Source of the DNA: Rebecca billardiae RCC1528
Lineage: Eukaryota; Protista; Haptophyta
Length of the DNA: 64,000 bases
Assembly (NCBI GenBank): GCA_965240325.2
Contig: OZ251255.1
Location: forward strand, 186,001 to 250,000
Reading direction: 5' to 3'
The position numbers were made by a program, and so were the translations under genes. Positions 411 to 52,451 of the stretch are shown one piece after another. The notes below the pieces were generated by a model. The model worked only from the letters and a program-made list of their open reading frames with translations. It made no database searches and was not told where the DNA came from. Numbering within the stretch: the first letter of the stretch is position 1; each line of letters begins with the position of its first letter.

Positions 411-1356
411 CTAGCGCGCGCCAGCGTGCTGCCGCAGCTGCGCCACCTCCAGCTGCAGCTCGCGCGAGCGGCCGTCCACCCACTGCAGCGCGCCCAGGTG
501 CGCGTCGAGCACGCGCACGAGCTGGGAGAGCTCGGAGCCGCCGCCCAGCCCGCCGCCGAGCGCGTCGGCGGCCGCGGCGTCGGCCGCCGAGCCGCCGGCG
601 CCGCCGTCGTGGCCGGAGGCGCTGCCCGCGCCGCCGGCGGCGCGCGCCGCGCCGCCCGCGCGCCGGTTGAGCGCGCCGATCGCGGCGGCGAGCAGCCGCG
701 CGCTCTCCGCGAGCTCCGCGTCCGTCTCCTCCGCCAGCCGGTACGCGGCCTGCGGGGTAGGGGTAGGGTTAGGGGTAGGGTTAGGAGCAGGGGTAGGGTT
801 GGGGGCGGAGGGCCATGTCGAGAGGGGGCTGTGGTGAGGCGCGCGCGGGCGAGGCGTGGGCGCGCGGTGCACGCCCTCCCCACCCTCGGCCCGACGGCGC
901 GGCCGCAGCACCGGGCACACGCGCGGCGCGCGCGCAGGCCGGGCGCTTTGCACTGCGCTGCGCTCGCTCACCGCGCGCTCGACGGCGGCCGCCTCGCCCT
1001 CGAGCGAGAGCTCGCGCTCCACCGCGCCCTCGAGCTTGGTCAGGTGGTCGTGCAGCGCGTCCTGATGCTCAAGCACAAGCTCGAGCTCGGCGTCGAGCTC
1101 GTCCTGCGCCTCGCGCACCTGCAGGGGGGCACGCGCGGGTCGTGTGTCGCGCTCGGCGGTGGGCGCGCGTGCGCACACGCGCGCGCGCCGCCACCGAGGC
1201 GCGCACAGTCCGGGCGCACAGTCCGGGGGGACGGACGCAGCGGCGCGCGGCGCGCCCGCACGCGCCGCACCCGTAGCACGTCCTCGTGCAGCGACACGAT
1301 GGTGGCGCGGTTGGCCGCGATGGCCGAGTCCCACGCGCGCAGCTGCGCCGCCTGCC
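411..1356 (-). pseudogene. NUP62: 5'-truncated Nup62 copy 1 (Nsp1-type coiled-coil exons only, no FG region)
   Basis: Collinear with 8754..9696, including both introns. Homology stops abruptly at 1356, and there is no in-frame ATG upstream. Confidence 0.8.
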
Positions 1357-1821
1357 TGCAGCAAGGTAAGCGTCCGCAGAGCGATCAAACATCGGGCGCG
1401 CAGCATCGTTGCGCCATCCTCTTCCATTGCACGAGCGCTGCTGGACGAGGTAAACGTCGTCACGCTCGTGGCAGATGCGCTGCGCTTCATGTGCCTGCTC
1501 GAGCAGCGCGTGCCCACCCTCGATCGCGAGTGGCACACGCTCCTGCACTGCGCGCGCGCGCACCGCACCGAGAGCTCCTGATACCGCCTGATGGCCGAAC
1601 GTGCGAGTGCCGGACCTGGCGCGCGGAGCGGCGAGCGCCGACGAGCGCTTGGACCTGGACGCGCTGTTGCGCAGCGTGGCGGCCGTGCACGACGCCGACG
1701 CGACCTTCGCGAACCCGCTGGGGAAATATTGCGACAGCACTGGCACGGCCCGCCGACCCCCCCGCCCGCCAGGGCAGAGTTTACTGTTCTTTGTGCAGTG
1801 TTGGATGGCGTCAATCACGCC
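1357..1821 (+). pseudogene. Unrelated coding-like fragment fused to the Nup62 piece (weakly F-box-like), interrupted; also at 5166..5630
   Basis: Reads ALLDEVNVVTLVADALRFMCLLEQRVPTLDREWHTLL, then a stop, then LDLDALLRSVAAVHDADATFANPL in another frame. Confidence 0.25.
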
Positions 1822-1860
1822 TTAACCAAGTGTGCACGTTAAAACATAGTATAAACTGTA
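1822..1860 (+). mobile_element. TTAA plus putative left terminal inverted repeat (copy 1)
   Basis: TTAA|CCAAGTGTGCACGTTAAAACATAGTATAAACTGTA; inverted match to 49320..49359. Confidence 0.6.
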
Positions 1861-2076
1861 GTTGTTACGAGCCCCATGAACAGTGATCAGTACCCGCGCT
1901 TACCCTGATATATATATATGGCATGTCGTCAGGGTTGATATATGGTGATGCCAAGCCGAACGATTTCATGCGCGATGTGCGCTGAATCCGCTGATAATCC
2001 TGATATCATCCAGGACGGCGCCGGATCTCCGCCGCCGGGAAAGCGCAGCGCAGCGGCCTAGCCAACTCCCACCGTG

Positions 2077-3174
2077 ATGCGGCAGGTGCGCGCTCTTCGG
2101 GCGCACACGTACGGCGATGCCCGGGATGTCCTGGACGTGAGCAGGGTCCCCGCTCCGACGCGCGCATCGCCGGGCGAGGTGCTCGTTCTCGTCGCATGTG
2201 CCTCACTCCGCGTGGCTGACACGTTTCTGCTCACGGGCAAGCACCCAATGTCACCGCCGGTGCCGTACACGCCTGGCCATGATGCGGCCGGTGTCGTGGC
2301 GGAAGTCGGCGCGGGCGTTACACATGTGAGCGTCGGCGATCGTGTGTGGCTCTGCGGCGCTTCGAGTGGCGCGTGTGCCGAGCTGTGCGTGTGTGACGCC
2401 AACCGTGTGCATGCGCTGCCTGAACACGTGACTTTTGCCGAGGCGGCTGCGATGCCAACGCCGCTGCTCACAGCGCATCGTGCGCTGTTCACCAAGGCGC
2501 GTGTGCGGCCTGGCGAGACTATCTTGGTGCACGGTGCGTCGGGGGCTACCGGCCTAGCCGTCGTCACGCTCGCTGCCGCGCACGGCTGCGAAGTCGTGGG
2601 GACGGCATCCACGCCCGAGGGATCGCGAGCCGTGCGCGCCGCAGGTGCCAAGACCGTGCTTGACCACTCGCAGTGGCGTGAGCCCGACCAGCCGATCAGC
2701 CTGCCACTGGGCGTGCACCCGACGCTGGTCATCGAGATGGCGGCCCACGCCAACCTGCAGAAGGCGGTGGAGGCTGTCGCGCAGGGCGGGCACGTGCTCG
2801 TCATCGGCTCTCACGGCTCACTCGACTTCAGCCCTCGAGCGCTCATGAACCGCGAGGCAACTGTGAGCGGCATGATGGTGCACCACGCATCCGACCAGGA
2901 GTACCGCAGCGCAGTGAACGACGTGCAGGCGCTGATCGCGCGACCGGGTGCAATCGTGCTGCCCCGCGTCGAGGCCGAGTACCCGCTGGAGGAGGCCATC
3001 GCTGGCTTCGACCGCGTGCAGAAGCGAATTGGCCCGCCTGGCTCTTCTGGGCGTGTCGTGCTGCGCGTGCACTCAGATGAGGAGATGGGGAGCGTCGCAG
3101 CCACATACTTGGCCGCCGCCAGTGCTGGCATGCAGCCATCACACGCCAGCACGGCGGCGCGCAATAAGCAGTGA
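2077..3174 (+). CDS. CRYZ: Zeta-crystallin / NADPH:quinone oxidoreductase (MDR superfamily), intronless, copy 1
   Basis: Motifs PYTPGHDAAGVV, GETILVHGASGATG (NADPH binding), IEMAAHANL and GSHGSLDFSPRALM match CRYZ/qor. Confidence 0.92.
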   Translation: MRQVRALRAHTYGDARDVLDVSRVPAPTRASPGEVLVLVACASLRVADTFLLTGKHPMSPPVPYTPGHDAAGVVAEVGAGVTHVSVGDRVWLCGASSGACAELCVCDANRVHALPEHVTFAEAAAMPTPLLTAHRALFTKARVRPGETILVHGASGATGLAVVTLAAAHGCEVVGTASTPEGSRAVRAAGAKTVLDHSQWREPDQPISLPLGVHPTLVIEMAAHANLQKAVEAVAQGGHVLVIGSHGSLDFSPRALMNREATVSGMMVHHASDQEYRSAVNDVQALIARPGAIVLPRVEAEYPLEEAIAGFDRVQKRIGPPGSSGRVVLRVHSDEEMGSVAATYLAAASAGMQPSHASTAARNKQ

Positions 3175-4219: not shown

Positions 4220-5165
4220 CTAGCGCGCGCCAGCGTGCTGCCGCAGCTGCGCCACCTCCAGCTGCAGCTCGCGCGAGCGGCCGTCCACCCACTGCAGCGC
4301 GCCCAGGTGCGCGTCGAGCACGCGCACGAGCTGGGAGAGCTCGGAGCCGCCGCCCAGCCCGCCGCCGAGCGCGTCGGCGGCCGCGGCGTCGGCCGCCGAG
4401 CCGCCGGCGCCGCCGTCGTGGCCGGAGGCGCTGCCCGCGCCGCCGGCGGCGCGCGCCGCGCCGCCCGCGCGCCGGTTGAGCGCGCCGATCGCGGCGGCGA
4501 GCAGCCGCGCGCTCTCCGCGAGCTCCGCGTCCGTCTCCTCCGCCAGCCGGTACGCGGCCTGCGGGGTAGGGGTAGGGTTAGGGGTAGGGTTAGGAGCAGG
4601 GGTAGGGTTGGGGGCGGAGGGCCATGTCGAGAGGGGGCTGTGGTGAGGCGCGCGCGGGCGAGGCGTGGGCGCGCGGTGCACGCCCTCCCCACCCTCGGCC
4701 CGACGGCGCGGCCGCAGCACCGGGCACACGCGCGGCGCGCGCGCAGGCCGGGCGCTTTGCACTGCGCTGCGCTCGCTCACCGCGCGCTCGACGGCGGCCG
4801 CCTCGCCCTCGAGCGAGAGCTCGCGCTCCACCGCGCCCTCGAGCTTGGTCAGGTGGTCGTGCAGCGCGTCCTGATGCTCAAGCACAAGCTCGAGCTCGGC
4901 GTCGAGCTCGTCCTGCGCCTCGCGCACCTGCAGGGGGGCACGCGCGGGTCGTGTGTCGCGCTCGGCGGTGGGCGCGCGTGCGCACACGCGCGCGCGCCGC
5001 CACCGAGGCGCGCACAGTCCGGGCGCACAGTCCGGGGGGACGGACGCAGCGGCGCGCGGCGCGCCCGCACGCGCCGCACCCGTAGCACGTCCTCGTGCAG
5101 CGACACGATGGTGGCGCGGTTGGCCGCGATGGCCGAGTCCCACGCGCGCAGCTGCGCCGCCTGCC
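4220..5165 (-). pseudogene. NUP62: 5'-truncated Nup62 copy 2
   Basis: Same sequence as copy 1 at offset 3809. Confidence 0.8.
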
Positions 5166-5630
5166 TGCAGCAAGGTAAGCGTCCGCAGAGCGATCAAACA
5201 TCGGGCGCGCAGCATCGTTGCGCCATCCTCTTCCATTGCACGAGCGCTGCTGGACGAGGTAAACGTCGTCACGCTCGTGGCAGATGCGCTGCGCTTCATG
5301 TGCCTGCTCGAGCAGCGCGTGCCCACCCTCGATCGCGAGTGGCACACGCTCCTGCACTGCGCGCGCGCGCACCGCACCGAGAGCTCCTGATACCGCCTGA
5401 TGGCCGAACGTGCGAGTGCCGGACCTGGCGCGCGGAGCGGCGAGCGCCGACGAGCGCTTGGACCTGGACGCGCTGTTGCGCAGCGTGGCGGCCGTGCACG
5501 ACGCCGACGCGACCTTCGCGAACCCGCTGGGGAAATATTGCGACAGCACTGGCACGGCCCGCCGACCCCCCCGCCCGCCAGGGCAGAGTTTACTGTTCTT
5601 TGTGCAGTGTTGGATGGCGTCAATCACGCC

Positions 5631-5667
5631 TTAACCAAGTGTGCACGTTAAAACATAGTAAACTGTA
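5631..5667 (+). mobile_element. TTAA plus putative left terminal inverted repeat (copy 2)
   Basis: TTAA|CCAAGTGTGCACGTTAAAACATAGTAAACTGTA; equals the reverse complement of 49320..49359 apart from a 3-bp indel. Confidence 0.6.
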
Positions 5668-5883
5668 GTTGTTACGAGCCCCATGAACAGTGATCAGTAC
5701 CCGCGCTTACCCTGATATATATATATGGCATGTCGTCAGGGTTGATATATGGTGATGCCAAGCCGAACGATTTCATGCGCGATGTGCGCTGAATCCGCTG
5801 ATAATCCTGATATCATCCAGGACGGCGCCGGATCTCCGCCGCCGGGAAAGCGCAGCGCAGCGGCCTAGCCAACTCCCACCGTG

Positions 5884-6981
5884 ATGCGGCAGGTGCGCGC
5901 TCTTCGGGCGCACACGTACGGCGATGCCCGGGATGTCCTGGACGTGAGCAGGGTCCCCGCTCCGACGCGCGCATCGCCGGGCGAGGTGCTCGTTCTCGTC
6001 GCATGTGCCTCACTCCGCGTGGCTGACACGTTTCTGCTCACGGGCAAGCACCCAATGTCACCGCCGGTGCCGTACACGCCTGGCCATGATGCGGCCGGTG
6101 TCGTGGCGGAAGTCGGCGCGGGCGTTACACATGTGAGCGTCGGCGATCGTGTGTGGCTCTGCGGCGCTTCGAGTGGCGCGTGTGCCGAGCTGTGCGTGTG
6201 TGACGCCAACCGTGTGCATGCGCTGCCTGAACACGTGACTTTTGCCGAGGCGGCTGCGATGCCAACGCCGCTGCTCACAGCGCATCGTGCGCTGTTCACC
6301 AAGGCGCGTGTGCGGCCTGGCGAGACTATCTTGGTGCACGGTGCGTCGGGGGCTACCGGCCTAGCCGTCGTCACGCTCGCTGCCGCGCACGGCTGCGAAG
6401 TCGTGGGGACGGCATCCACGCCCGAGGGATCGCGAGCCGTGCGCGCCGCAGGTGCCAAGACCGTGCTTGACCACTCGCAGTGGCGTGAGCCCGACCAGCC
6501 GATCAGCCTGCCGCTGGGCGTGCACCCGACGCTGGTCATCGAGATGGCGGCCCACGCCAACCTGCAGAAGGCGGTGGAGGCTGTCGCGCAGGGCGGGCAC
6601 GTGCTCGTCATCGGCTCTCACGGCTCACTCGACTTCAGCCCTCGAGCGCTCATGAACCGCGAGGCAACTGTGAGCGGCATGATGGTGCACCACGCATCCG
6701 ACCAGGAGTACCGCAGCGCAGTGAACGACGTGCAGGCGCTGATCGCGCGACCGGGTGCAATCGTGCTGCCCCGCGTCGAGGCCGAGTACCCGCTGGAGGA
6801 GGCCATCGCTGGCTTCGACCGCGTGCAGAAGCGAATTGGCCCGCCTGGCTCTTCTGGGCGTGTCGTGCTGCGCGTGCACTCAGATGAGGAGATGGGGAGC
6901 GTCGCAGCCACATACTTGGCCGCCGCCAGTGCTGGCATGCAGCCATCACACGCCAGCACGGCGGCGCGCAATAAGCAGTGA
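5884..6981 (+). CDS. CRYZ: Zeta-crystallin / NADPH:quinone oxidoreductase, copy 2
   Basis: Protein identical to copy 1. Confidence 0.92.
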   Translation: MRQVRALRAHTYGDARDVLDVSRVPAPTRASPGEVLVLVACASLRVADTFLLTGKHPMSPPVPYTPGHDAAGVVAEVGAGVTHVSVGDRVWLCGASSGACAELCVCDANRVHALPEHVTFAEAAAMPTPLLTAHRALFTKARVRPGETILVHGASGATGLAVVTLAAAHGCEVVGTASTPEGSRAVRAAGAKTVLDHSQWREPDQPISLPLGVHPTLVIEMAAHANLQKAVEAVAQGGHVLVIGSHGSLDFSPRALMNREATVSGMMVHHASDQEYRSAVNDVQALIARPGAIVLPRVEAEYPLEEAIAGFDRVQKRIGPPGSSGRVVLRVHSDEEMGSVAATYLAAASAGMQPSHASTAARNKQ

Positions 6982-8753: not shown

Positions 8754-11176
8754 CTAGCGCGCGCCAGCGTGCTGCCGCAGCTGCGCCACCTCGAGCTGCA
8801 GCTCGCGCGAGCGGCCGTCCACCCACTGCAGCGCGCCCAGGTGCGCGTCGAGCACGCGCACGAGCTGGGAGAGCTCGGAGCCGCCGCCCAGCCCGCCGCC
8901 GAGCGCGTCGGCGGCCGCGGCGTCGGCCGCCGAGCCGCCGGCGCCGCCGTCGTGGCCGGAGGCGCTGCCCGCGCCGCCGGCGGCGCGCGCCGCGCCGCCC
9001 GCGCGCCGGTTGAGCGCGCCGATCGCGGCGGCGAGCAGCCGCGCGCTCTCCGCGAGCTCCGCGTCCGTCTCCTCCGCCAGCCGGTACGCGGCCTGCGGGG
9101 TAGGGGTAGGGGTAGGGGTAGGAGGGAGTAGTGTTAGTGTTAGGGGCGGAGGGCCACGTCGAGAGGGGCTGTCGTGAGGCGCGCGCGGGCGGGGCGTGGG
9201 CGCGCGGTGCACGCCCTCCCCACCCTCGGCCCGACGGCGCGGCCGCAGCACCGGGCACACGCGCGGCGCGCGCGCAGGCCGGGCGCTTTGCACTGCGCTG
9301 CGCTCGCTCACCGCGCGCTCGACGGCGGCCGCCTCGCCCTCGAGCGAGAGCTCGCGCTCCACCGCGCCCTCGAGCTTGGTCAGGTGGTCGTGCAGCGCGT
9401 CCTGGTGCTCAAGCACAAGCTCGAGCTCGGCGTCGAGCTCGTCCTGCGCCTCGCGCACCTGCAGGGGGGCACGCGCGGGTCGTGTGTCGCGCTCGGCGGT
9501 GGGCGCGCGTGCGCACACGCGCGCGCGCCGCCACCGAGGCGCGCACAGTCCGGGCGCACAGTCCGGGCGGACGGACGCAGCGGCGCGCGGCGCGCCCGCA
9601 CGCGCCGCACCCGCAGCACGTCCTCGTGCAGCGACACGATGGTGGCGCGGTTGGCCGCGATGGCCGCGTCCCACGCGCGCAGCTGCCCCGCCTGCCGGCC
9701 GAACGCGTGCATGTGCGCGGCCAGCTCCGAGCGGGTGGCCTGAATGATTGACTGCAGCGTGGAGGACGCGTGGCGCGAGGGGAGGCGACTCGAGCCGCCG
9801 CACCCCGCCGCGCCCGACGCCGCCGCGCCGCCGCCGCCGCCGGAGCCGGCCGCGCCCGCCGCCGCGCCGAGTGCGCCGAGCCCGGCCGCGCCGCCGCCGC
9901 CGCCGCCGCCGCCGTGCGCCGCCGCCGCGCCCGCCGCGGCGGCGCCGCCCCCGGTGGCAGCGCCGGGCGTGCCGCCGCCGGCCGCCGCGCCGAACAGCGG
10001 CGCGGGCGTGCCGCCGCCGCCCGGCGGCGCCGGCGCGGCGCTGCTCGGTGCAAGCGGCGCGAGGCTGAACCCTAACCCGCCCGCCCCGCCGGCGCCGCCC
10101 GCGCCAGCGGCGGCGCCGCCGGCCGGCGGCGGCGCGGCGGCGGCGGCGGCGGCGGAGGTTGGTGCCAGGCCAGGCGCGCCGCCGGGCGCGGGCATCGCGA
10201 GGGAGGCGGGGGGCTGCGGCGCGCCGAACAGCGACGGCGCCGCCGCCGCGCTCGCCGCGGGCGGCGGCGCGCCGAAGAGCCCGGCGCCGGCCCCGGCACC
10301 CGCGGCGGCGGTTGGCGCGCCGAAGAGCCCGGACCCGGCCCCGGCGGCGGCGGTGGGCGCGCCGAAGAGCCCGGCCCCGGCCCCGGCACCAGCGGCGGCG
10401 GTGGGCGCGCCGCCGCCGCCGCCGGGCGGCGCGGCGGCGGTGGGCGGCGCGGCCGCGGACGCGCCAGGCAGCCCGCCGCCGCCGCCGCCGCCGAAGGAGA
10501 AGCCGCCGCCGGGCGCGGGCGCGGCGGGCTGCGCGGCGGAGGTGGGCGCGCCGCCGAACAGCCCGCACGCGCCGCCCGCCGCGCTCGACGCCGTCGGCGC
10601 CGCCGCGCCGAAGAGCGACGGCGGCGCGGCGCCGGCCGCGCCCGCCGCCGGGGTGGGCGCTCCGCCGCCGGCGGCGGCGGCGGCGCCGCCGGCACCGAGG
10701 CTGAAGGAGGGCGCGGCCGAGGCGGCGGGCGTGACGCCGCCACCGCCGAAGAGTGAGGGCGCGCCTCCGCCGCCCGGCGCGCCGCCGCCGCCGAAGAGCG
10801 ACGGCGCCGCCGCCGAGCTCGCCGGCGGCGCGCCAAACAGCGAAGGCGCCGCAGCCGCCGCGCCGCCGCCGCCCAGCGCGGGCGGCGCGGCGGAGGAGGG
10901 AGTGGGCGCGCCGCCAAAGCTGAAGGCGCCAGCGCCGGCCCCGCCCGCCGGCGCCGGCGCCGCGCCGCCAAAGAGCGACGGCCCCGCGCCCGCGCCCGCG
11001 GTCGGCGCGGCCGCGCCGCCGCCGCCGCCGCCAAACGCAAAGCCGCCGGGCGCGGGCGCGGCGGGCTGCGCGGCGGCGGCGCCGCCGGCGGGCGGCGCGC
11101 CAAACGAGAAGGCGCCGCCCCCCGCCGCGGGCGGCGCGCCGCCCTGCGCCGTCGGCGCGCCGAACGAGAAGCTCAT
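8754..11176 (-). CDS. NUP62: Nucleoporin Nup62/Nsp1; exons 11176-9611, 9458-9294, 9092-8754
   Basis: N-terminal FSFG/SLFG/GLFG repeats. The C-terminal part matches Nsp1_C (QLRAWD..IVSLHEDV, ELELVLEHQDAL, AYRLAEETD, VRVLDAHLGALQWVD). The GT-AG introns keep the frame. Confidence 0.93.
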
Positions 11177-11349
11177 CGGCGCGTGCGCGTGCGCTCGGTC
11201 GGGTCTGCGCTCGGCGCCGGCCCTCGTGCGCCGGGCTGGAGAGCTGCCGCTCCAGTGCCAAGTCCGGGGCGGGCACTCACGCGCGCCGGACTTGCTTGGG
11301 CTGTTCGAAGCGGGGCCACGCCACCGAGCGACCCGGGCGCTGGCGCGCG
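11177..11349. promoter_or_regulatory. Probable compact bidirectional promoter region
   Basis: 173 bp lie between divergent ATGs at 11176(-) and 11350(+). Confidence 0.5.
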
Positions 11350-14300
11350 ATGGCGGACGCGCGCCCGCGCGCCGACGGGCGCCCGCCGCCGCGGAACATC
11401 GTGGTGGACGTGAGCACGTCGTTCCACCTCGAGCGTGTGGGCAAGGTGACCGACAAGTGGCGCAGCACGTCCACGCCCGCCACGCCGCGCGCCGCGCCGC
11501 ACGCGCGCGCGTGCGGCGCGCTCGGCGCGGCCGGCGGCGCGGCCGACGCGCAACCGCCGCCGGGCTCGAGCCTCGACGCGCTCAACTCGGAGTACGTGCA
11601 CCGCGCGTACGCCGGGCTGGGCGGCACGGCGCCCGTCTTTGCGCGCCACGCGCCCGCCGGCGCGGCCGCCCCGCCCAAGCCGCCGCCGCCCACGCTCGCT
11701 GCGCTGCGCGGCGCATGCGGCGGCGGCGGCACGCCGCCGGCCGCGCCGTCCGCCGCCGCCGCGGCCGGCTCGCCGAGCGTGTCGCCGCCGCCGCCGGCGG
11801 GCGCTATCTTCGAGCTCTTCCGCCCCGAGCGCCCGCACCCCGCCGCGGCCGCCGCCGCCGCCGCCGCGCACGCCCGAGCCCGCTACGTGCCGCCGCCGCC
11901 GCTGCCCGCGCCGCAGCCGCAGCCGCAGCCGCCGACGTGCGCCGCCGGCGCGCGCGCCGCGCCGCCCGGCGCGCCAGCCCGGGCGGTCCCCGGGCTCTTC
12001 GCCGGTCTGGCGCTCACCGACGCCCGCGCAGGGGGGGTGCCGCCCGGCGCGCACGCCGGCGCTGAAGCGGCCGGGGCGGCGGCGCCGCCCGTGCGGGCAG
12101 CCTGCGGCGGCGCGCCGCCGGCTTGGCCGCCGCGCGCGTCTGGCGGGGCGGCGGTGGGCAGTGCGCCGGCGGCGCAGGGCGTGGGGGCGCTCTTTGGTGG
12201 CCTGTGCGTGCACGAGGCCGCGCCGAGCGGCGCCGACGCCACCGCCGCCTCGCTGCCGCCGGCGCCGGCCGCGCCGCAGCAGCGTGGGGCCGAGTGCGCT
12301 CGGCGGCGGCACGCGGCGGCGGGCGCGGCGGGTGCGGCGGGTGCGGCGGGTGCGGCGGGTGCGGCGGGTGCGGCGGCGGGGATGGCCGCCCCCGGCGGCA
12401 CGCGCGCAGCCGGTGGCGCGCACGGGGCCCCGCCCTGCGCGGGTGGTGGGGACGGCGGCCTCTTCAGCGGGCTCACACAGCTGGGCGCGCCAGCCGCGCC
12501 CTCGCCGTCAGCGGCGCGCGCCGCCGACGCGACAGCCGGCCTGGGCGGCGGCGCGGCGGCAGCAGGCGGCGGCGCGGCGGCAGCAGGCGGAGGCGCGGCG
12601 GCGGCATGCGGCGCCCCGGGCGCGGAGGGCGCGGCTGGCGCGCTGTTCGGGGGGCTCACCGTCGTCGCGGCCGATGCGGGGCCGGGCTGCGCGGCGGGCG
12701 GCGGCGCGGCGGCGGCGGCGGTGGCGGCGCAGCCAGACGCGCCGCATGGCGGCGGCGGCGGCGGCGGCGGCGGCAGCGGCTGCGGCAGCGGCCGCGGCCT
12801 CGGCGGCCGCGCCGGCTGTGCGGGCGGCGGTGGCTGCGGCGCTGTGGGCAGCAGCAGCTCGGCGCCGGCGCTCTTCGGCGGGCTGCAGCTGGTGGGCGCG
12901 GAGGGCTGCGCCGGCGGCGGCAGCGCGGCCGTGAGCGCGGGCGGTGGCAGCTGCTGCAGCCTCTTCGACGGACTGGCACTGGCGGGCGGCGGCGGCGGCG
13001 GCGCCGACGCGGCCGCGGCCGCGGGCGGCGGCGGCGCGGCGGCGGCGGGCGCCGCCGCCGGGAGCGGCGGCGCGCGCGGCGGTGGCGGCGATGGCGCGGC
13101 TTTGCCGCCCGCTGGCTCGGGGCTCGGGCTGGCGTGGATGGCGCACGCCGCCGAGTTCGAGGCGCTCGCCAACGAGTATGCCGGCCTCGGGCCGGACGGG
13201 GACGGGGCGGCGCCGGCCAATCAGAGCGCGGCAAGGCCGGGGCCGGGCGGGGCGCCGGCCAATCAGAGCGCGGCAGGGCCGGGGCTGGACACCGGCGGGC
13301 CCGGGGACGCCGCGGGCGTGGCCCTGGGCCCAGGCGGCGCGTGGGGCGCTGAGGACGCCGCGCCGCCGGCTTCTGCCGCACCGCCGCCGCGCGCCGCCGC
13401 GCGTTGGGCGGCGGCGGCGCGCGACGACGACGCGGCCGGCGCGGCGCGAGGCAGCGGGGGGGGCAGCGCCGATGGTGGCGGCGAGGGCGGGGGCGGCCTC
13501 TTCGCCGGCCTCGCGCTCGGCGCGGCGGCGGCGCCGCCCGACGGCGGTGCGCTGGAAGAAGCGCCGCCGCACGCGGCCGCCCCCGCGCGCCCCTGGGCGG
13601 GCGCCGCGCGCGCAGCCGGCGGCGGCGGCGATGGCGGCGGCGGGGACGCGCCGCTCGGCGCGTGCGGCGAGCGCGCGGACTGGCCTGGCGTGGACGCGGC
13701 GGACGACGGCGCGGCCGACTACGGCGAGCCCGCGCCCGTGGACGCGGCAGCCATCGTGCTCGGCCACGAGCAGCTGCCGGATGCCACCGGTGGCGCGGGC
13801 TTCATGGCGGCCGACGTCAAGGCGCCCGCCACGGCGCCCGTAACGGCCGTAACGGCCTCTGTAACGGCGCCCGTAACGGCCTCCGTCACGGCGGGATCTG
13901 GCACCGCGCGCGCGGGCGCGCGGACGGAGCGCGAGGCGGGAGGCGCGGCCGGCGCGGCGCGCCCGCCGCCCGCAGCACCGCGCGAGGCGGGCGTGGCGCA
14001 CGGCGCGGCGAGCGGCCGCCCGCCGCCGCCGCCGCCACCGCCGCCGGCAGGCGGCGCGGCCGCCGCCGCGCCGGGCCGCGACAGCCAGGCCCAAGCACAG
14101 GGGGGCGCGCCGCGCCGCTGGGAGCAGGTGTACGCGCAGCGGCAGCGCGAGCGCGAGGCGCTCGAGGCGGATGCAGACCGGCTCGCTGCGGCGGTGGGGA
14201 GCGCGCGCGCCGCGCACGACCGCTCGTCACGCGAGCTGGCGCGAGCCGCCGCCGAGCTGAGCGGCGCGCGCGAGCGGTGCGAAGCGGCGGCGGCGGCCAA

Positions 14301-14505
14301 GCGCGCGGCGGTGGAGGGGCGGCGCTTCAAGGAGGCCGCGGCGGCGTCAGCGGCGGAGAAGGCGGCCTCAGAGGCGCTGGCGCCGCTCGCCGACGCGCAC
14401 GCGCGCGCGGAGGCGGCGCGCGACGCGTCGGCGCGCGAGTGCGCCGCGCTCGAGGCCGAGCAGGCGGCGGCGCTCGAGGCGGTTGCGCTCGCGCTGCTGC
14501 GCTGA
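11350..14505 (+). CDS. Low-complexity protein with 7 LFxGLx[LV]-type motifs and a C-terminal coiled coil with a UVR-like segment
   Basis: Single 1051-codon ORF from the ATG at 11350, with repeated GLFAGLAL/ALFGGLxV/SLFDGLAL and a helical C-terminus containing KRAAVEGRRFKEAA. Confidence 0.75.
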   Translation: MADARPRADGRPPPRNIVVDVSTSFHLERVGKVTDKWRSTSTPATPRAAPHARACGALGAAGGAADAQPPPGSSLDALNSEYVHRAYAGLGGTAPVFARHAPAGAAAPPKPPPPTLAALRGACGGGGTPPAAPSAAAAAGSPSVSPPPPAGAIFELFRPERPHPAAAAAAAAAHARARYVPPPPLPAPQPQPQPPTCAAGARAAPPGAPARAVPGLFAGLALTDARAGGVPPGAHAGAEAAGAAAPPVRAACGGAPPAWPPRASGGAAVGSAPAAQGVGALFGGLCVHEAAPSGADATAASLPPAPAAPQQRGAECARRRHAAAGAAGAAGAAGAAGAAGAAAGMAAPGGTRAAGGAHGAPPCAGGGDGGLFSGLTQLGAPAAPSPSAARAADATAGLGGGAAAAGGGAAAAGGGAAAACGAPGAEGAAGALFGGLTVVAADAGPGCAAGGGAAAAAVAAQPDAPHGGGGGGGGGSGCGSGRGLGGRAGCAGGGGCGAVGSSSSAPALFGGLQLVGAEGCAGGGSAAVSAGGGSCCSLFDGLALAGGGGGGADAAAAAGGGGAAAAGAAAGSGGARGGGGDGAALPPAGSGLGLAWMAHAAEFEALANEYAGLGPDGDGAAPANQSAARPGPGGAPANQSAAGPGLDTGGPGDAAGVALGPGGAWGAEDAAPPASAAPPPRAAARWAAAARDDDAAGAARGSGGGSADGGGEGGGGLFAGLALGAAAAPPDGGALEEAPPHAAAPARPWAGAARAAGGGGDGGGGDAPLGACGERADWPGVDAADDGAADYGEPAPVDAAAIVLGHEQLPDATGGAGFMAADVKAPATAPVTAVTASVTAPVTASVTAGSGTARAGARTEREAGGAAGAARPPPAAPREAGVAHGAASGRPPPPPPPPPAGGAAAAAPGRDSQAQAQGGAPRRWEQVYAQRQREREALEADADRLAAAVGSARAAHDRSSRELARAAAELSGARERCEAAAAAKRAAVEGRRFKEAAAASAAEKAASEALAPLADAHARAEAARDASARECAALEAEQAAALEAVALALLR

Positions 14506-22190: not shown

Positions 22191-25100
22191 CACGCGACGC
22201 CCGCGCGCGCGGCCGAGCCGAGTGGCGGCGGCAGCGGCGGCGGCTCGTTCGAGCGGCGTGCCGTGCGGCGCAGCCGCTCGCGCACGCCCTCGCCCGCGCC
22301 CTCCGCCGCCGACGGCGCCGCCAGCCCCACGCCCGCGGCCGGCGGCGGCGCCGGTCTGCCTCCGTTCGTGTCGCCTGCTCGCGCGGGCGAGGTCGATGAG
22401 GCCACGGGCGAGCGGCGCGGGACCACGATCCTGCCGCTGGCGAAGTCGCGCGGCTCGGGCGCGCTCGTCGCGCGGCGGCACTCGGAGGTGGTGCTGCCCT
22501 CGCCGCTCGACGCGCCGCTCGTCAGCGCCGCGCTCGACGGCGGCCGCGAGCAGCGCGCCGCCGGCCGCGGCCGCGCCGAGCGCGCGCGCGGCGCGACCAC
22601 TCAAAGCATGGGCTGCGTGCCGGCGGCGCGTCCGAACGAGCCCGCGGCTGCGCCGCTGGCGGAGCCGGCGGCGGCGGCGTCGCCGCGCACGCCGCCGCCG
22701 GTGCAGCTGGCCTCTGTGGCGTCGCCCAAGCCGCCGCTGCCGCTGCCGCCGCCGCCCGCCGGCGCGGGAGGCCCCGGCGCCGGCGCGGCGCCGTCGGCGG
22801 CTGGCCGGCAGCGGCTGCAGCCGCCCGCGGAGGGCGCGCGCAACCGGCGCTCCTCCGCCGAGCGCGCGGGCGGCAAGACCGAGGCCGTCTCCTCGCCCGG
22901 CGAGGTGCGCCGCACGCCCTCGCTGCAGCGCGCGCTCAAGCGCGGCACGGCCGCGGCCATCCTGCCAGGGGCGGCGCTGCGCGCGGCGCGCGCCTTCAGC
23001 TCTGCGCCCGAGTCGGGCGCAGCGGATGCAGCGGCCGCGGGCGCGCCCGCCGCGGCCGAGCCCGCGGACGGCGGCGCGCTGGAGCTCGGCGCGTCGCTCA
23101 CGAGCGCCGCTGCAGCCGCGCCCGACGGCGCCGCGCCCGCGCCGTCAGCAGGCGCCACCCCCGAGGGCGAGCCGTCCCTCCGTCCCGCTTCCCTCGAGCT
23201 TGAGCTAGGCCTTGAGCTGGACGGCGCCGAGCTGCCCTCGCCCTCGCCCACGCCCGCCCCGGTCCGGCTCGACCCTGTCGTCGACGGCGTCGCGACGTAC
23301 CTCCTCGAGTCCGGCCTCTTCGGCGCGTCCTGCCCGCGCGCCGACGCGCTCGCGGCCGCGCAGGGCGCGGGCGTGCGCTCGTGCCTCCGGTACGAGGGAA
23401 TCTATCGAGAAGGACTGCGCGGGGCGTTCATGTATGTGGTGCTCAAGGGGACGGTGCTGCTGCGCTCGTTCGACGGCGGCGAGCTCGTGCGGGTATGCGC
23501 CGCCGCCGCGCCGCGCGCGCGACCCATCCCGCCGCGCGACGCCGCGCGACCGCCGCGCCGCCGGCCGCGCGCGCGCTCGCGCGCGCCGACCCGCGTGTCC
23601 CGTAAGCCGACGCGCTCCGCACCGCGCCGCCTGCCTCGGCGCCCGCCGCCGTGCGCCGCAGGTGGGCCCGGGCGTGTGCATTGGCGAGGAGGCGTGCTGG
23701 CGCGTGCAGCAGGCCGCTGAGCACTCCAAGCTGCACGGCGTCGGCCTCGCTGTCGGGCTGGGCGTGCGCGCGAGCGCGCCGCGCGGCCCCCTGTCGGCGG
23801 CGTGTGGCGGCGGCGGCGCGGCGGCGGGGTCGCGCGGCGCGGGCGGCGCGGGCGCGGCGCAGCAGCAGGCGGCGCAGGGCGGCGCGCCGGCCGGCGTCGC
23901 CGCCGCCGCCAGGCCGGGCGGCGGTGGCGGCGGCGGCGAGTCGCTCTTCGAGGCGCTGCCTCGGCTGGCCAGCGCGACCGTGGGTGGAGACGGCGCGGTG
24001 CTCCTGGCCATTCCCTCCGAGGTGTGCGCGTGCCCGAGGCGCGTGTGCGCGTGTGCGCCCGCCCGCCGCCGCTCGCCCTCCCTCCCTCCGCCGACGTGTT
24101 ATTCACGTGTTCGCCCGCCGCCGCGCCGCGCCGCGCCGCCGCCCGCCCCCTTCTCTCGCAGGCGGTGCCCAAGGCGATCACGCGCGCGGTGCACACGCGC
24201 GTCGCCGCGCGGCTGCTCGCCGTGCACTCGGGCCCGCTCTTCTCCGCCATCGTCGCCGGCGCGCTCGCCGGCCAGGAGGACCAAACCGAGACGCTTTTGG
24301 AAAAGCTCGGCAGCTTATTCCAATTTAAATCGATCCCGACCGACGGCGTGATTTGCCGGCAGGGGCAGAACGCCGACGAGTTCTACGTGATGCTGCGCGG
24401 CTCGGCGAGGGTGCGCGCGGCGCGGCGGCGCCCACGGGCGGGGCGCCGGCGGCCGCCCGACGCCTTGCACGCGCGCGCGGATGCCGACGCCGCGCGCACC
24501 CTCGCCACCCGCGCCGCGCTCCGCCCTACTGACCATCCCCCTAACCCTAACCCCCTAACCCTAACTACCCTCCTTGCCCCCTTACCCTCCTTGCAGGTGC
24601 TCGTGTGGCTGGGCAAGCAGAAGGAGGCGATCCACGTGGGCACGATCACCGCGAAGGAGGGCGAGGGCACGCAGGCCGGCACCCGCCACTTCGGCGAGGC
24701 CGGCCTCATCGCCGCGGCGAACGCGCACGACGCGCCCCTGCCGGTGCGCACGGCGTCCATCATCGCCAACGAGCCGTGCTGGCTGCTCGTGCTGCCGCAG
24801 AAGAAGTACGCGGCGTTCAACAACCTGCTGCCCGGCGTGGACGGGCACTTTGCCAAGGCGAAGGTGTGCGCGCGCGCGCGCGCCACGCGCGCGCGCGGCC
24901 GCGGCGGCGCGGCACGCGGCCGCGCGCACGCCCGCCGCTTCCGAGCCGACCCCCCCTCCATCCGCTCCGCCCCGCCCGCGCCCGCGCCGCACGGCCGCGC
25001 GCGCGCGCGCGCAGGCGATCCAAGAGCAGCTCAACGCGGGGCTCAAGGTGCGCCGCGGCTTCATCGACAAGATCTTCGCGCGCAACTCGCAGGGCTCCGA

Positions 25101-25257
25101 GTGGGAGGAGGCGGCCGACCTCGTCGGCGAGACGCGCGGCGGCGGCGGCGCGGGCGCCGAGCACGCGCACATGTGGAAGCGGGTCAAAGAGATGCGCGAG
25201 GCGCGGCGGGAGGACCGGGTGCTGCGCCGCCGCCGGCGGTACTCGCACGCGACGTGA
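15420..25257 (+). CDS. Very large low-complexity protein with two C-terminal cyclic-nucleotide-binding domains; introns 20780-21088, 23493-23661, 24022-24161, 24411-24596, 24864-25014
   Basis: CNB1 reads [38 protein letters not shown]2 reads [42 protein letters not shown]. Splicing joins the frames. The extent of the N-terminal part is less certain. Confidence 0.8.
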
Positions 25258-25473
25258 GGCGGTGGCTGATGGGCGCCGGCGGCGCGCGGCGCGCAGACCG
25301 GCGCCGAGCCGTGCGCGCGGACTGATGCCCACAGCGCCTCATGCGCGCGGAGTGACCGGCGACGACGAGGAGCCGCCGGCCCGCGAGCGGCCGGCGGCAT
25401 ATGGCGTAGTAGATCCATGCTCGGCGTGCTGCGCGCTCGCTTGGGCGTCGCTCTCCGCCGACGACCGTGCGTA

Positions 25474-25749
<276 letters not shown>

Positions 25750-26055
25750 CGCACCCGCCGGTCGCGGCGACCTCCGTCGCACGGGCGTCAGCCATAAGAC
25801 CCGCGTCGCGCAATAGCGCCGGGGCAGCCATCGTGTCTGTCGATGCAAAACTTAGCTACCACAACCGCGTGCTGTTTCGGCAGTTTCGCGGGGCACAGCC
25901 GCGGCAAGTGCAACGATCCGGGCTCGCGCGAAAACTGACGAAAAGTCGTCGTCACGAATTCTTTCGATCGGGAAGGCAGGCTGGTGGGGGCATCCCCGGC
26001 GCATGGCGGCAGCCGTGGCGCCCCGCGCGCGCCAGCCAGCCCACAAGCGCCGCGC

Positions 26056-51656: not shown

Positions 51657-52451
51657 TCAGCCCTGCTGCCGCCGCCACTCGCCGCGCGCGGGCGCGCGGC
51701 CGCGCCGCCTGCGGTGCCGCTGGTTGAGCTCCGGCTGCACGACGCACGAGCTGTTCGAGCTGGCCTCCACGCCGACGGTGTTGTTGGCGTGGCGCACGAG
51801 GCGGAGGCACGCCACGCGCGCCGGGTCGCCGTCGCCGTCGTTGAACTCGCCCTTCACCGCGCAGCGGTCGCAGTCGAGCGCGCCGCGGCCCGCGTGAGCG
51901 CATGCTGGGCTTGACACCCACAAGGAGCGCGCGGCGCCGCCCACGCGGAAGTCGGGGCAGGTCCACGTGACGCGCTCGCGCGTGGCGCGGCCGCTCACGC
52001 GGAGGGTGAGCGTGCCCGTCAGCGCGTAGTCCAGCGCCGCCGGCGCGTCCCCCTTCGCCGCGCCCATCCCCAGCGTCGCGTGCGGCCGCAGCCCCGCTGT
52101 GAACGCCTTGGCAATCAGCTCGGCGGCGCCGCGCGGCGGCGTGCCGCCGGTGGACCTGACGCCGATGTCTGAGACGCCCGAGCCGAAGCCGATCGTCTGC
52201 TGCCACCCGTCCACCCGCCACCCCGGGATCGCCTTGCGCACGTCGTAGTCGACGTGGATCCCGAAGAGAGAGCCGCCGCTGAACACGATCTGCTGCTCGC
52301 TGCCGCTCGTGGCGCTGGCGCCGCGCTCGCGGGCGCGGGCGGCGGGAGGCGGCGGGGGGGCAGAGCACCAGGCGAGGTAGCCGACGTAGAGCGCCGCGCC
52401 GGAGAGCACGAGCGCGGTGCTCACGGCCACGGCGCGCGTTCGCCGCGCCAT
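51657..52451 (-). CDS. Hypothetical protein with an N-terminal membrane anchor and a beta-rich, Cys-containing domain
   Basis: 264-aa ATG ORF with hydrophobic segment VAVSTALVLSGAALYVGYLAW and non-repetitive composition. Confidence 0.6.
   Translation of the reverse strand: MARRTRAVAVSTALVLSGAALYVGYLAWCSAPPPPPAARARERGASATSGSEQQIVFSGGSLFGIHVDYDVRKAIPGWRVDGWQQTIGFGSGVSDIGVRSTGGTPPRGAAELIAKAFTAGLRPHATLGMGAAKGDAPAALDYALTGTLTLRVSGRATRERVTWTCPDFRVGGAARSLWVSSPACAHAGRGALDCDRCAVKGEFNDGDGDPARVACLRLVRHANNTVGVEASSNSSCVVQPELNQRHRRRRGRAPARGEWRRQQG

Follow-up and report, generated by a model that had tools for sequence, protein, structure and literature searches.

Scaffolds of the Eps15/Ede1 type cluster adaptors by combining a disordered region, which carries many copies of the DPF motif recognised by the alpha ear of AP-2, with helical self-association. 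The adaptor complex AP-4 has an ear-binding accessory protein of its own, tepsin (ENTHD2), which binds the AP-4 beta4 appendage through the linear motif LFxG[M/L]x[L/V] (PMC13335578); in human tepsin this motif reads SLFAGMELV (PMC3317806). Tepsin also binds LC3B (PMC11064669; PMC13335578), and the same beta4-motif residues have been reported to engage LC3B too (PMC13335578). In a survey of 53 species, AP-4 and tepsin were present throughout the TSAR and Haptista species covered, including all of the stramenopiles and haptophytes (PMC12517565), and whether AP-4 has a non-clathrin scaffold has been stated as an open question (PMC7185972). Here we analyze a stretch of 64,000 nucleotides from the haptophyte Rebecca billardiae RCC1528 (contig OZ251255.1, positions 186,001 to 250,000). 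This whole stretch is referred to below as the window, and all coordinates are counted from its first letter. Within it we describe a gene for a largely disordered protein of 1051 residues that contains seven copies of an LFxGL motif resembling the beta4-ear motif of tepsin.

Motif array and family conservation

The protein is encoded on the forward strand at 11350–14505, in an open frame that extends from 11296 to 14505. Translation from the first ATG at 11350 to the stop codon at 14503–14505 yields the 1051 residues, apparently from a single exon. The seven LFxGL motifs all fall in this one frame and read GLFAGLAL (11992–12015), ALFGGLCV (12187–12210), GLFSGLTQ (12457–12480), ALFGGLTV (12640–12663), ALFGGLQL (12868–12891), SLFDGLAL (12958–12981) and GLFAGLAL (13495–13518). 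An earlier, sequence-only reading of the window had listed these strings at these positions and had described Gly/Ala linkers and disorder around them; all of this was borne out. The array far exceeds what the composition of the protein (31% Ala, 19% Gly, 11% Pro) would produce, with seven motifs observed against a mean of 0.006 and a maximum of one in 20,000 residue shuffles. The motifs also hold 7 of the 14 phenylalanines in the protein, and a six-frame scan of the 64-kb window turned up only three LFxG[LM] strings besides these.

The window copies define an eight-residue consensus, [GAS]-L-F-x-G-L-x-[LV], repeated at a spacing of 30–179 residues. The information per position peaks at L-1, F0, G+2, L+3 and [LV]+5. 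All copies fit the strict form LFxG[ML]x[LV], except for the third, which has Q in the last position. At the nucleotide level, synonymous codons vary from copy to copy (CTC/CTG, TTC/TTT and GGT/GGC/GGG/GGA), and the flanks are unrelated. Only copies 5 and 6 depart from this, as the first and second units of a 90-bp tandem duplication at 12871–13034. Because the codons differ among the remaining copies, the array is kept at the protein level rather than as a DNA repeat. The linkers between the motifs are low-complexity and rich in Ala, Gly and Pro. An AlphaFold2 model, computed from a three-sequence alignment, assigned residues 1–920 a pLDDT below 50 and no secondary structure.

An exhaustive phmmer search over 1.84 billion cluster representatives, with the window protein as the query, returned exactly one relative. 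This protein, P0001, has 740 residues (E 1.8e-5) and originates from an MMETSP marine-protist transcript. A longer form of it, P0002 (824 residues, 89% identical), is encoded on two transcript-like JGI contigs of 2.6 kb (L001 and L002) that hold no neighboring genes; for P0001, an exact look-up recorded no contig. Word-index searches with the whole of P0001 and with its residues 1–80 retrieved only P0001 and P0002, while scans of metagenome contigs with the family alignments gave 600 pattern matches, none of which was confirmed.

The window protein and its relative share an N-terminal block, the motif copies, a WMAxAxEFExLA block and a C-terminal helical region that contains RRFKEAAAA. In pairwise BLAST comparisons with P0001, the N-terminus is 37% identical (E 9e-14) and the C-terminal 119 residues are 41% identical (E 7e-11). 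The middle block, LAWMAHAAEFEALANEY in the window protein and LQWMANASEFELLAVHY in P0001, is 50% identical (pairwise E 6e-7). The best-conserved stretch, IVxDVxTxFHLxRxxKVTDxWR (residues 17–38, 11398–11463), lies in the N-terminal block and matched no Pfam or PDB entry. It is followed in the alignment by a second, smaller conserved block, LDxLxxExVxRAxA (residues 75–88, 11572–11613).

In the region equivalent to the array, P0001 contains nine and P0002 eleven copies centered on [GASP]LF, with the same five informative positions as in the window protein. Some of them are exact (SLFEGLKL, PLFAGLSL, ALFNGLSL and ALFDGLAL) and others degenerate (GLFSTVAI and ALFADLRL). The linkers of the two proteins are unalignable, those of the relative being charged. 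Conservation of the motif in homologs had been proposed as a check in the sequence-only reading, and in the only relative detected the motif is indeed kept while the linkers have diverged, as is typical of short linear motifs with a function. Relative to P0001, P0002 has extra 30-residue units that bear the motif; the difference in length reflects either strain variation or a repeat that collapsed in one assembly. Together with the 30-residue duplication in the window protein, these units indicate that copy number evolves by tandem duplication in both lineages. The three proteins constitute a new orphan family of disordered scaffolds, in which a linear motif with five fixed positions is conserved in many copies, together with a helical tail.

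Domain content and the C-terminal helix

Pfam searches at E values up to 10, run with the whole window protein, its relatives and their termini, matched no family, and neither ENTH, VHS, UVR, Nsp1_C, Nup54 nor Nup58 was among the matches. Sequence and profile searches of the PDB with the N-terminal block and the C-terminal region gave only noise, such as TPR-like repeats and viral polymerases at E values near 1. The absence of ENTH and VHS domains claimed in the sequence-only reading is consistent with these searches, and also with the AlphaFold2 model, in which residues 1–920 adopt no fold. Two further readings were tried and dropped: the WMAxAxEFE block resembles a PAM2 motif but, by eye, is missing the PAM2 proline, and the LFxGL motif is missing the second glycine of the SHP box (FxGxGxxLG).

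The only part of the window protein modeled as structured is the C-terminal helical region (residues 923–1050, 14116–14499), which AlphaFold2 predicts as one helix of 128 residues with a pLDDT of 73–93. The model of P0001 has the same layout, with residues 1–598 disordered and a helix at 601–739. The helix is Ala-rich and highly charged and has one conserved proline, at a point where the pLDDT dips. We presume that this region is a self-association module. The sequence-only reading had called it a coiled coil. The long helix is confidently predicted; a heptad pattern, however, is absent, as the hydrophobicity spectrum shows no 3.5-residue periodicity. Large hydrophobic residues are barely enriched at the a and d positions, even in the best register (7/16 and 11/29).

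A segment of this helix, KRAAVEGRRFKEAAAA (14299–14346), had also been labeled UVR-like by eye. It contains RRFKEAAAA, which is invariant in all three proteins and includes the invariant residues F993 and A996. UVR segments, such as those of UvrB and ClpC, are antiparallel two-helix hairpins that dimerize head to head. Conservation of a phenylalanine with an alanine three residues on has been reported for their dimer interface (PMC13273187), and the invariant RRF-KEA core reproduces this arrangement. Pfam at E values up to 10 gave no UVR or DISC1 match, and PDB profile searches with alignments of 141 and 51 residues and with the RRFKEAAAA segment returned only noise, with no UVR or DISC1 chain. 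An Atlas language-model search returned plant hypothetical proteins, UVR and DISC1_C (overall scores of 0.76–0.86). UVR-domain and DISC1_C clusters (0.78–0.86) are among the neighbors of the C-terminal part, and we treat all of these as leads only. The UVR-like label therefore finds no confirmation in the profile searches, the resemblance being one seen by eye and in weak language-model leads. The overall layout does recall DISC1 proteins, which are disordered toward the N-terminus and self-associate through a helical core at the C-terminus. In contrast, AlphaFold2 gives a straight helix here, from three aligned sequences, rather than a hairpin, and the family has one RRFKEAAAA-type segment where DISC1 homologs have two or more. 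UVR-type self-association is plausible and unproven.

A second type of linear motif may be present in the middle block. The conserved stretch GLAWMAHAAEFEALANEY (13126–13179), aligned with LQWMANASEFELLAVHY of P0001, includes AEFEAL (13150–13167, residue 601), which corresponds to SEFELL (residue 555) in P0001. The xLIR pattern has one match in each of the window protein, P0001 and P0002, always in this block. AEFEAL may therefore be a second, single-copy motif for docking to ATG8. Since tepsin binds LC3B, the block fits an AP-4/ATG9/ATG8 theme, as a pattern match only.

The AP-4 beta4 ear and other candidate partners

The tepsin beta4-ear motif is fixed at five positions, and exactly these are the informative ones in the algal motif. 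Strict fits to LFxG[M/L]x[L/V] number six of seven in the window protein, four in P0001 and five in P0002. A literature search for LFxGL- and LFGGL-type strings found no other described motif class, and no receptor except the AP-4 beta4 ear is known for a motif of this type. As LFxG[M/L]x[L/V] is the motif by which tepsin binds this ear, we regard the ear as the best candidate partner. AP-4 is likely to be present in this alga by phylogenetic bracketing, since the survey cited above found the complex in all TSAR and Haptista species examined. A pattern scan of the proteins for clathrin boxes, for AP-1/AP-2 ear motifs and for DPF, FxDxF, NPF and WxxF found none, as expected for a clathrin-independent coat. 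Given these properties, a multivalent docking scaffold with the AP-4 beta4 ear as its partner is the best single explanation of the protein, one that we put forward tentatively. Of the AP-4 interpretation in the sequence-only reading, the motif array, which is conserved in the relative, and the absence of ENTH and VHS domains have stood, whereas the coiled-coil and UVR-like labels remain unconfirmed.

By sequence, the window protein is not a tepsin. Both proteins carry LFxG[M/L]x[L/V] in a disordered region; tepsin has LIR-type ATG8-binding motifs, and the algal family has one conserved xLIR-type block. However, tepsin combines ENTH and VHS-like domains with one beta4 motif and one epsilon-ear motif, while the window protein has six or seven copies of the beta4-type motif and ends in a long helix, with neither an epsilon-ear motif nor a folded domain that Pfam recognizes, and no sequence homology between the two was detected. 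In mechanism, it would resemble the Eps15/Ede1 scaffolds, with many copies of one putative ear-binding motif in a disordered chain and a helix at the C-terminus. No homology connects the window protein with these scaffolds either: it has no EH domains, UIMs, DPF or NPF, its motif differs, and presumably its adaptor does too.

In the AP-4 scaffold that we propose, some 900 disordered residues display the seven [GAS]-L-F-x-G-L-x-[LV] motifs, and the conserved 128-residue C-terminal helix would most likely pair or bundle the chains, at least doubling the valency. The Leu-Phe and Leu-x-Leu/Val side chains of each motif would insert into a hydrophobic groove of the partner domain. Several AP-4 complexes on the membrane could in this way be held together by a single molecule, much as Eps15 gathers AP-2 through its DPF repeats, and at the trans-Golgi network this would cluster the clathrin-independent AP-4 coat. 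A link to ATG8 may be added by the conserved EFExL block, of the LIR type, which occurs once. The fuller proposal, that the family is a non-clathrin scaffold of the AP-4 coat in algae of the pelagophyte or haptophyte type, its self-associating chains cross-linking many AP-4 complexes into a lattice and coupling AP-4 carriers to ATG8 membranes by way of the LIR-type block, is more speculative, and we consider it unlikely to hold in full.

Six or seven beta4-type motifs on a putative self-associating stalk are the expected look of an adaptor-clustering scaffold. With tepsin, the known AP-4 ear-binding accessory protein, having only a single beta4 motif, the window protein offers a concrete and cheaply testable scaffold candidate. 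Its value is limited by the two algal taxa in which the family has so far been found and by an AP-4 partnership that is proposed from the motif match.

Several observations weigh against a role at the AP-4 ear. The sequence-only reading had written the motif as [GS]LFxG[ML]x[LV]; six of the seven window copies fit without the prefix, but only three of seven with it. The reference itself is the consensus of animal tepsins, which may not hold outside animals, and about half of the motif copies in the relative are degenerate. The pattern S[AV]F[SA]FLN is reportedly that of the epsilon-ear motif; a pattern scan of the family found neither this nor the loose form [AVS]F[SA]F. The presumed self-association helix, as described above, has no heptad pattern. 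Finally, a family known from two algal taxa only yields no phylogenetic profile.

The same narrow distribution makes a lineage-specific partner plausible, and a different receptor ranks nearly level with the AP-4 beta4 ear; the other explanations considered below trail both. With the architecture unchanged, LFxGLx[LV] would here dock to another adaptor or coat appendage, to ATG8 or to a partner particular to these algae, and the match to tepsin would be convergent or coincidental. We consider this a real possibility, nearly as likely as docking to the beta4 ear. Binding to ATG8 would be in keeping with the reported engagement of LC3B by the beta4-motif residues of tepsin (PMC13335578) and with the conserved xLIR-type block in the same protein. 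The LFxGL copies themselves, however, miss the xLIR pattern, whose one match per protein lies in that different block. More generally, the agreement at all five informative positions with the beta4 motif, and the lack of any other motif class for LFxGL-type strings in the literature search, favor the beta4 ear over another receptor. Should the partner prove to be a different one, the family would still provide a clean natural case of a five-position linear motif that is kept in many copies while the chain around it drifts.

A receptor may also be dispensable. The hydrophobic LF..L.L patches could act as stickers that drive self-association, condensate formation or weak membrane binding with no folded receptor. 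The long disordered region, the low-complexity linkers and the regular reuse of hydrophobic patches would suit such a role, as would the shifts in motif number by tandem duplication in both lineages. Stickers such as FG, however, as a rule need only one or two residues and allow the surroundings to vary, whereas here five positions are kept, including an invariant glycine, a sign of a shaped binding site. In the relative, moreover, the linkers are charged rather than cohesive. We regard the sticker explanation as improbable.

The Nup62-type neighbor, the gene model and other features of the window

The gene upstream, on the reverse strand at 8757–11176, encodes an FG nucleoporin of the Nsp1/Nup62 type with 16 FG repeats. 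Its Pfam Nsp1_C match is split near 9400–9500 over two frames, of which one holds positions 15–71 of the domain (24.7 bits against a cutoff of 24.1) and the other, downstream, positions 65–104, from which we conclude that the gene has at least one intron. The start codons of the two divergent genes are separated by a 173-bp spacer (11177–11349), consistent with the promoter region shared with Nup62 that the sequence-only reading had recognized.

That reading had also offered an FG-like nucleoporin role as an alternative. In such a role, the window protein would be co-regulated with Nup62, its repeats would bind transport receptors and its helix would anchor in the pore, as in Nsp1, Nup57 and Nup49. 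Besides the head-to-head arrangement, this alternative can draw on the shared layout, with repeats in a disordered chain and a helix at the C-terminal end, which is that of FG nucleoporins in general (Nsp1/Nup62, Nup57/54 and Nup49/58), and on the LFGG of three window copies, which recalls the SLFGG repeats in the neighbor. Close pairs of divergent genes can, however, arise by chance in a compact genome, and the F-G core is not the conserved element of the array. All 16 repeats of the neighbor, set in Ala/Gly/Pro spacers, contain the F-G dipeptide and none reads LFxGL, whereas F-G occurs in 3 of the 7 window copies and in none of the 11 copies of P0002. The window motif fixes five positions rather than two, and its copies are sparse, 30–179 residues apart compared with a mean of 26 in the neighbor. 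A pattern scan found neither GLFG nor FxFG in the protein, and its C-terminal 141 residues, like those of the relative, matched no anchor domain (Nsp1_C, Nup54 or Nup58), even at an E value of 10. Because the F-G core is not what is conserved, we rate the nucleoporin alternative of the sequence-only reading low.

That the open frame is merely a product of base composition is very improbable: long frames of several hundred codons do occur in all six frames around 11350–14505, where GC content is 85%, the exact protein was absent from a collection of 15 billion proteins, and no sequencing run was listed for the locus, but proteins from assembled transcripts of another organism align with this frame in three distinct blocks and in the motif array, and third-position GC is 0.86–0.96. 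Because of the long ORFs in all six frames, the open frame alone carries no weight at this locus, in a window whose GC content is 64–87% per 2-kb bin. A word-index protein search with the window protein likewise gave zero matches. The alignment of the N-terminal, middle and C-terminal blocks and of the motifs in a single frame with transcript-derived proteins indicates that the ORF is a real gene, of a family that is transcribed in another organism.

Two further features lie within the coding region. A 42-bp tandem duplication at 13197–13285 produces two copies of GGCCAATCAGAGCG, which resembles a textbook CCAAT box and is translated, twice, as APANQSAA. At 13821–13893, where GC content is lower, an imperfect 12/24-bp repeat of CCGTAACGG units encodes repeats of the VTA type. 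The relative has no counterpart of this stretch or of about 190 residues around it, and it is possible that the stretch represents an intron retained in frame.

Elsewhere in the window, a recent tandem duplication has left a set of ORFs in two identical copies, at 411–3174 and, some 3.8 kb away, at 4220–6981, each including an ORF of 365 residues (2077–3174 and 5884–6981). A low-GC island (0.635 over 2 kb) spans 24000–26000. It includes a reverse-strand ORF of 215 residues at 25184–25831 in which first, second and third codon positions all have 44% GC. This is unlike the host genes, and the feature may be a mobile element or a recent insertion. Two short Logan contigs, L003 and L004, from runs ERR14847148 and ERR14847149, encode a protein identical to that of the reverse-strand ORF at 51660–52451, and these runs are probably from the same organism as the window.

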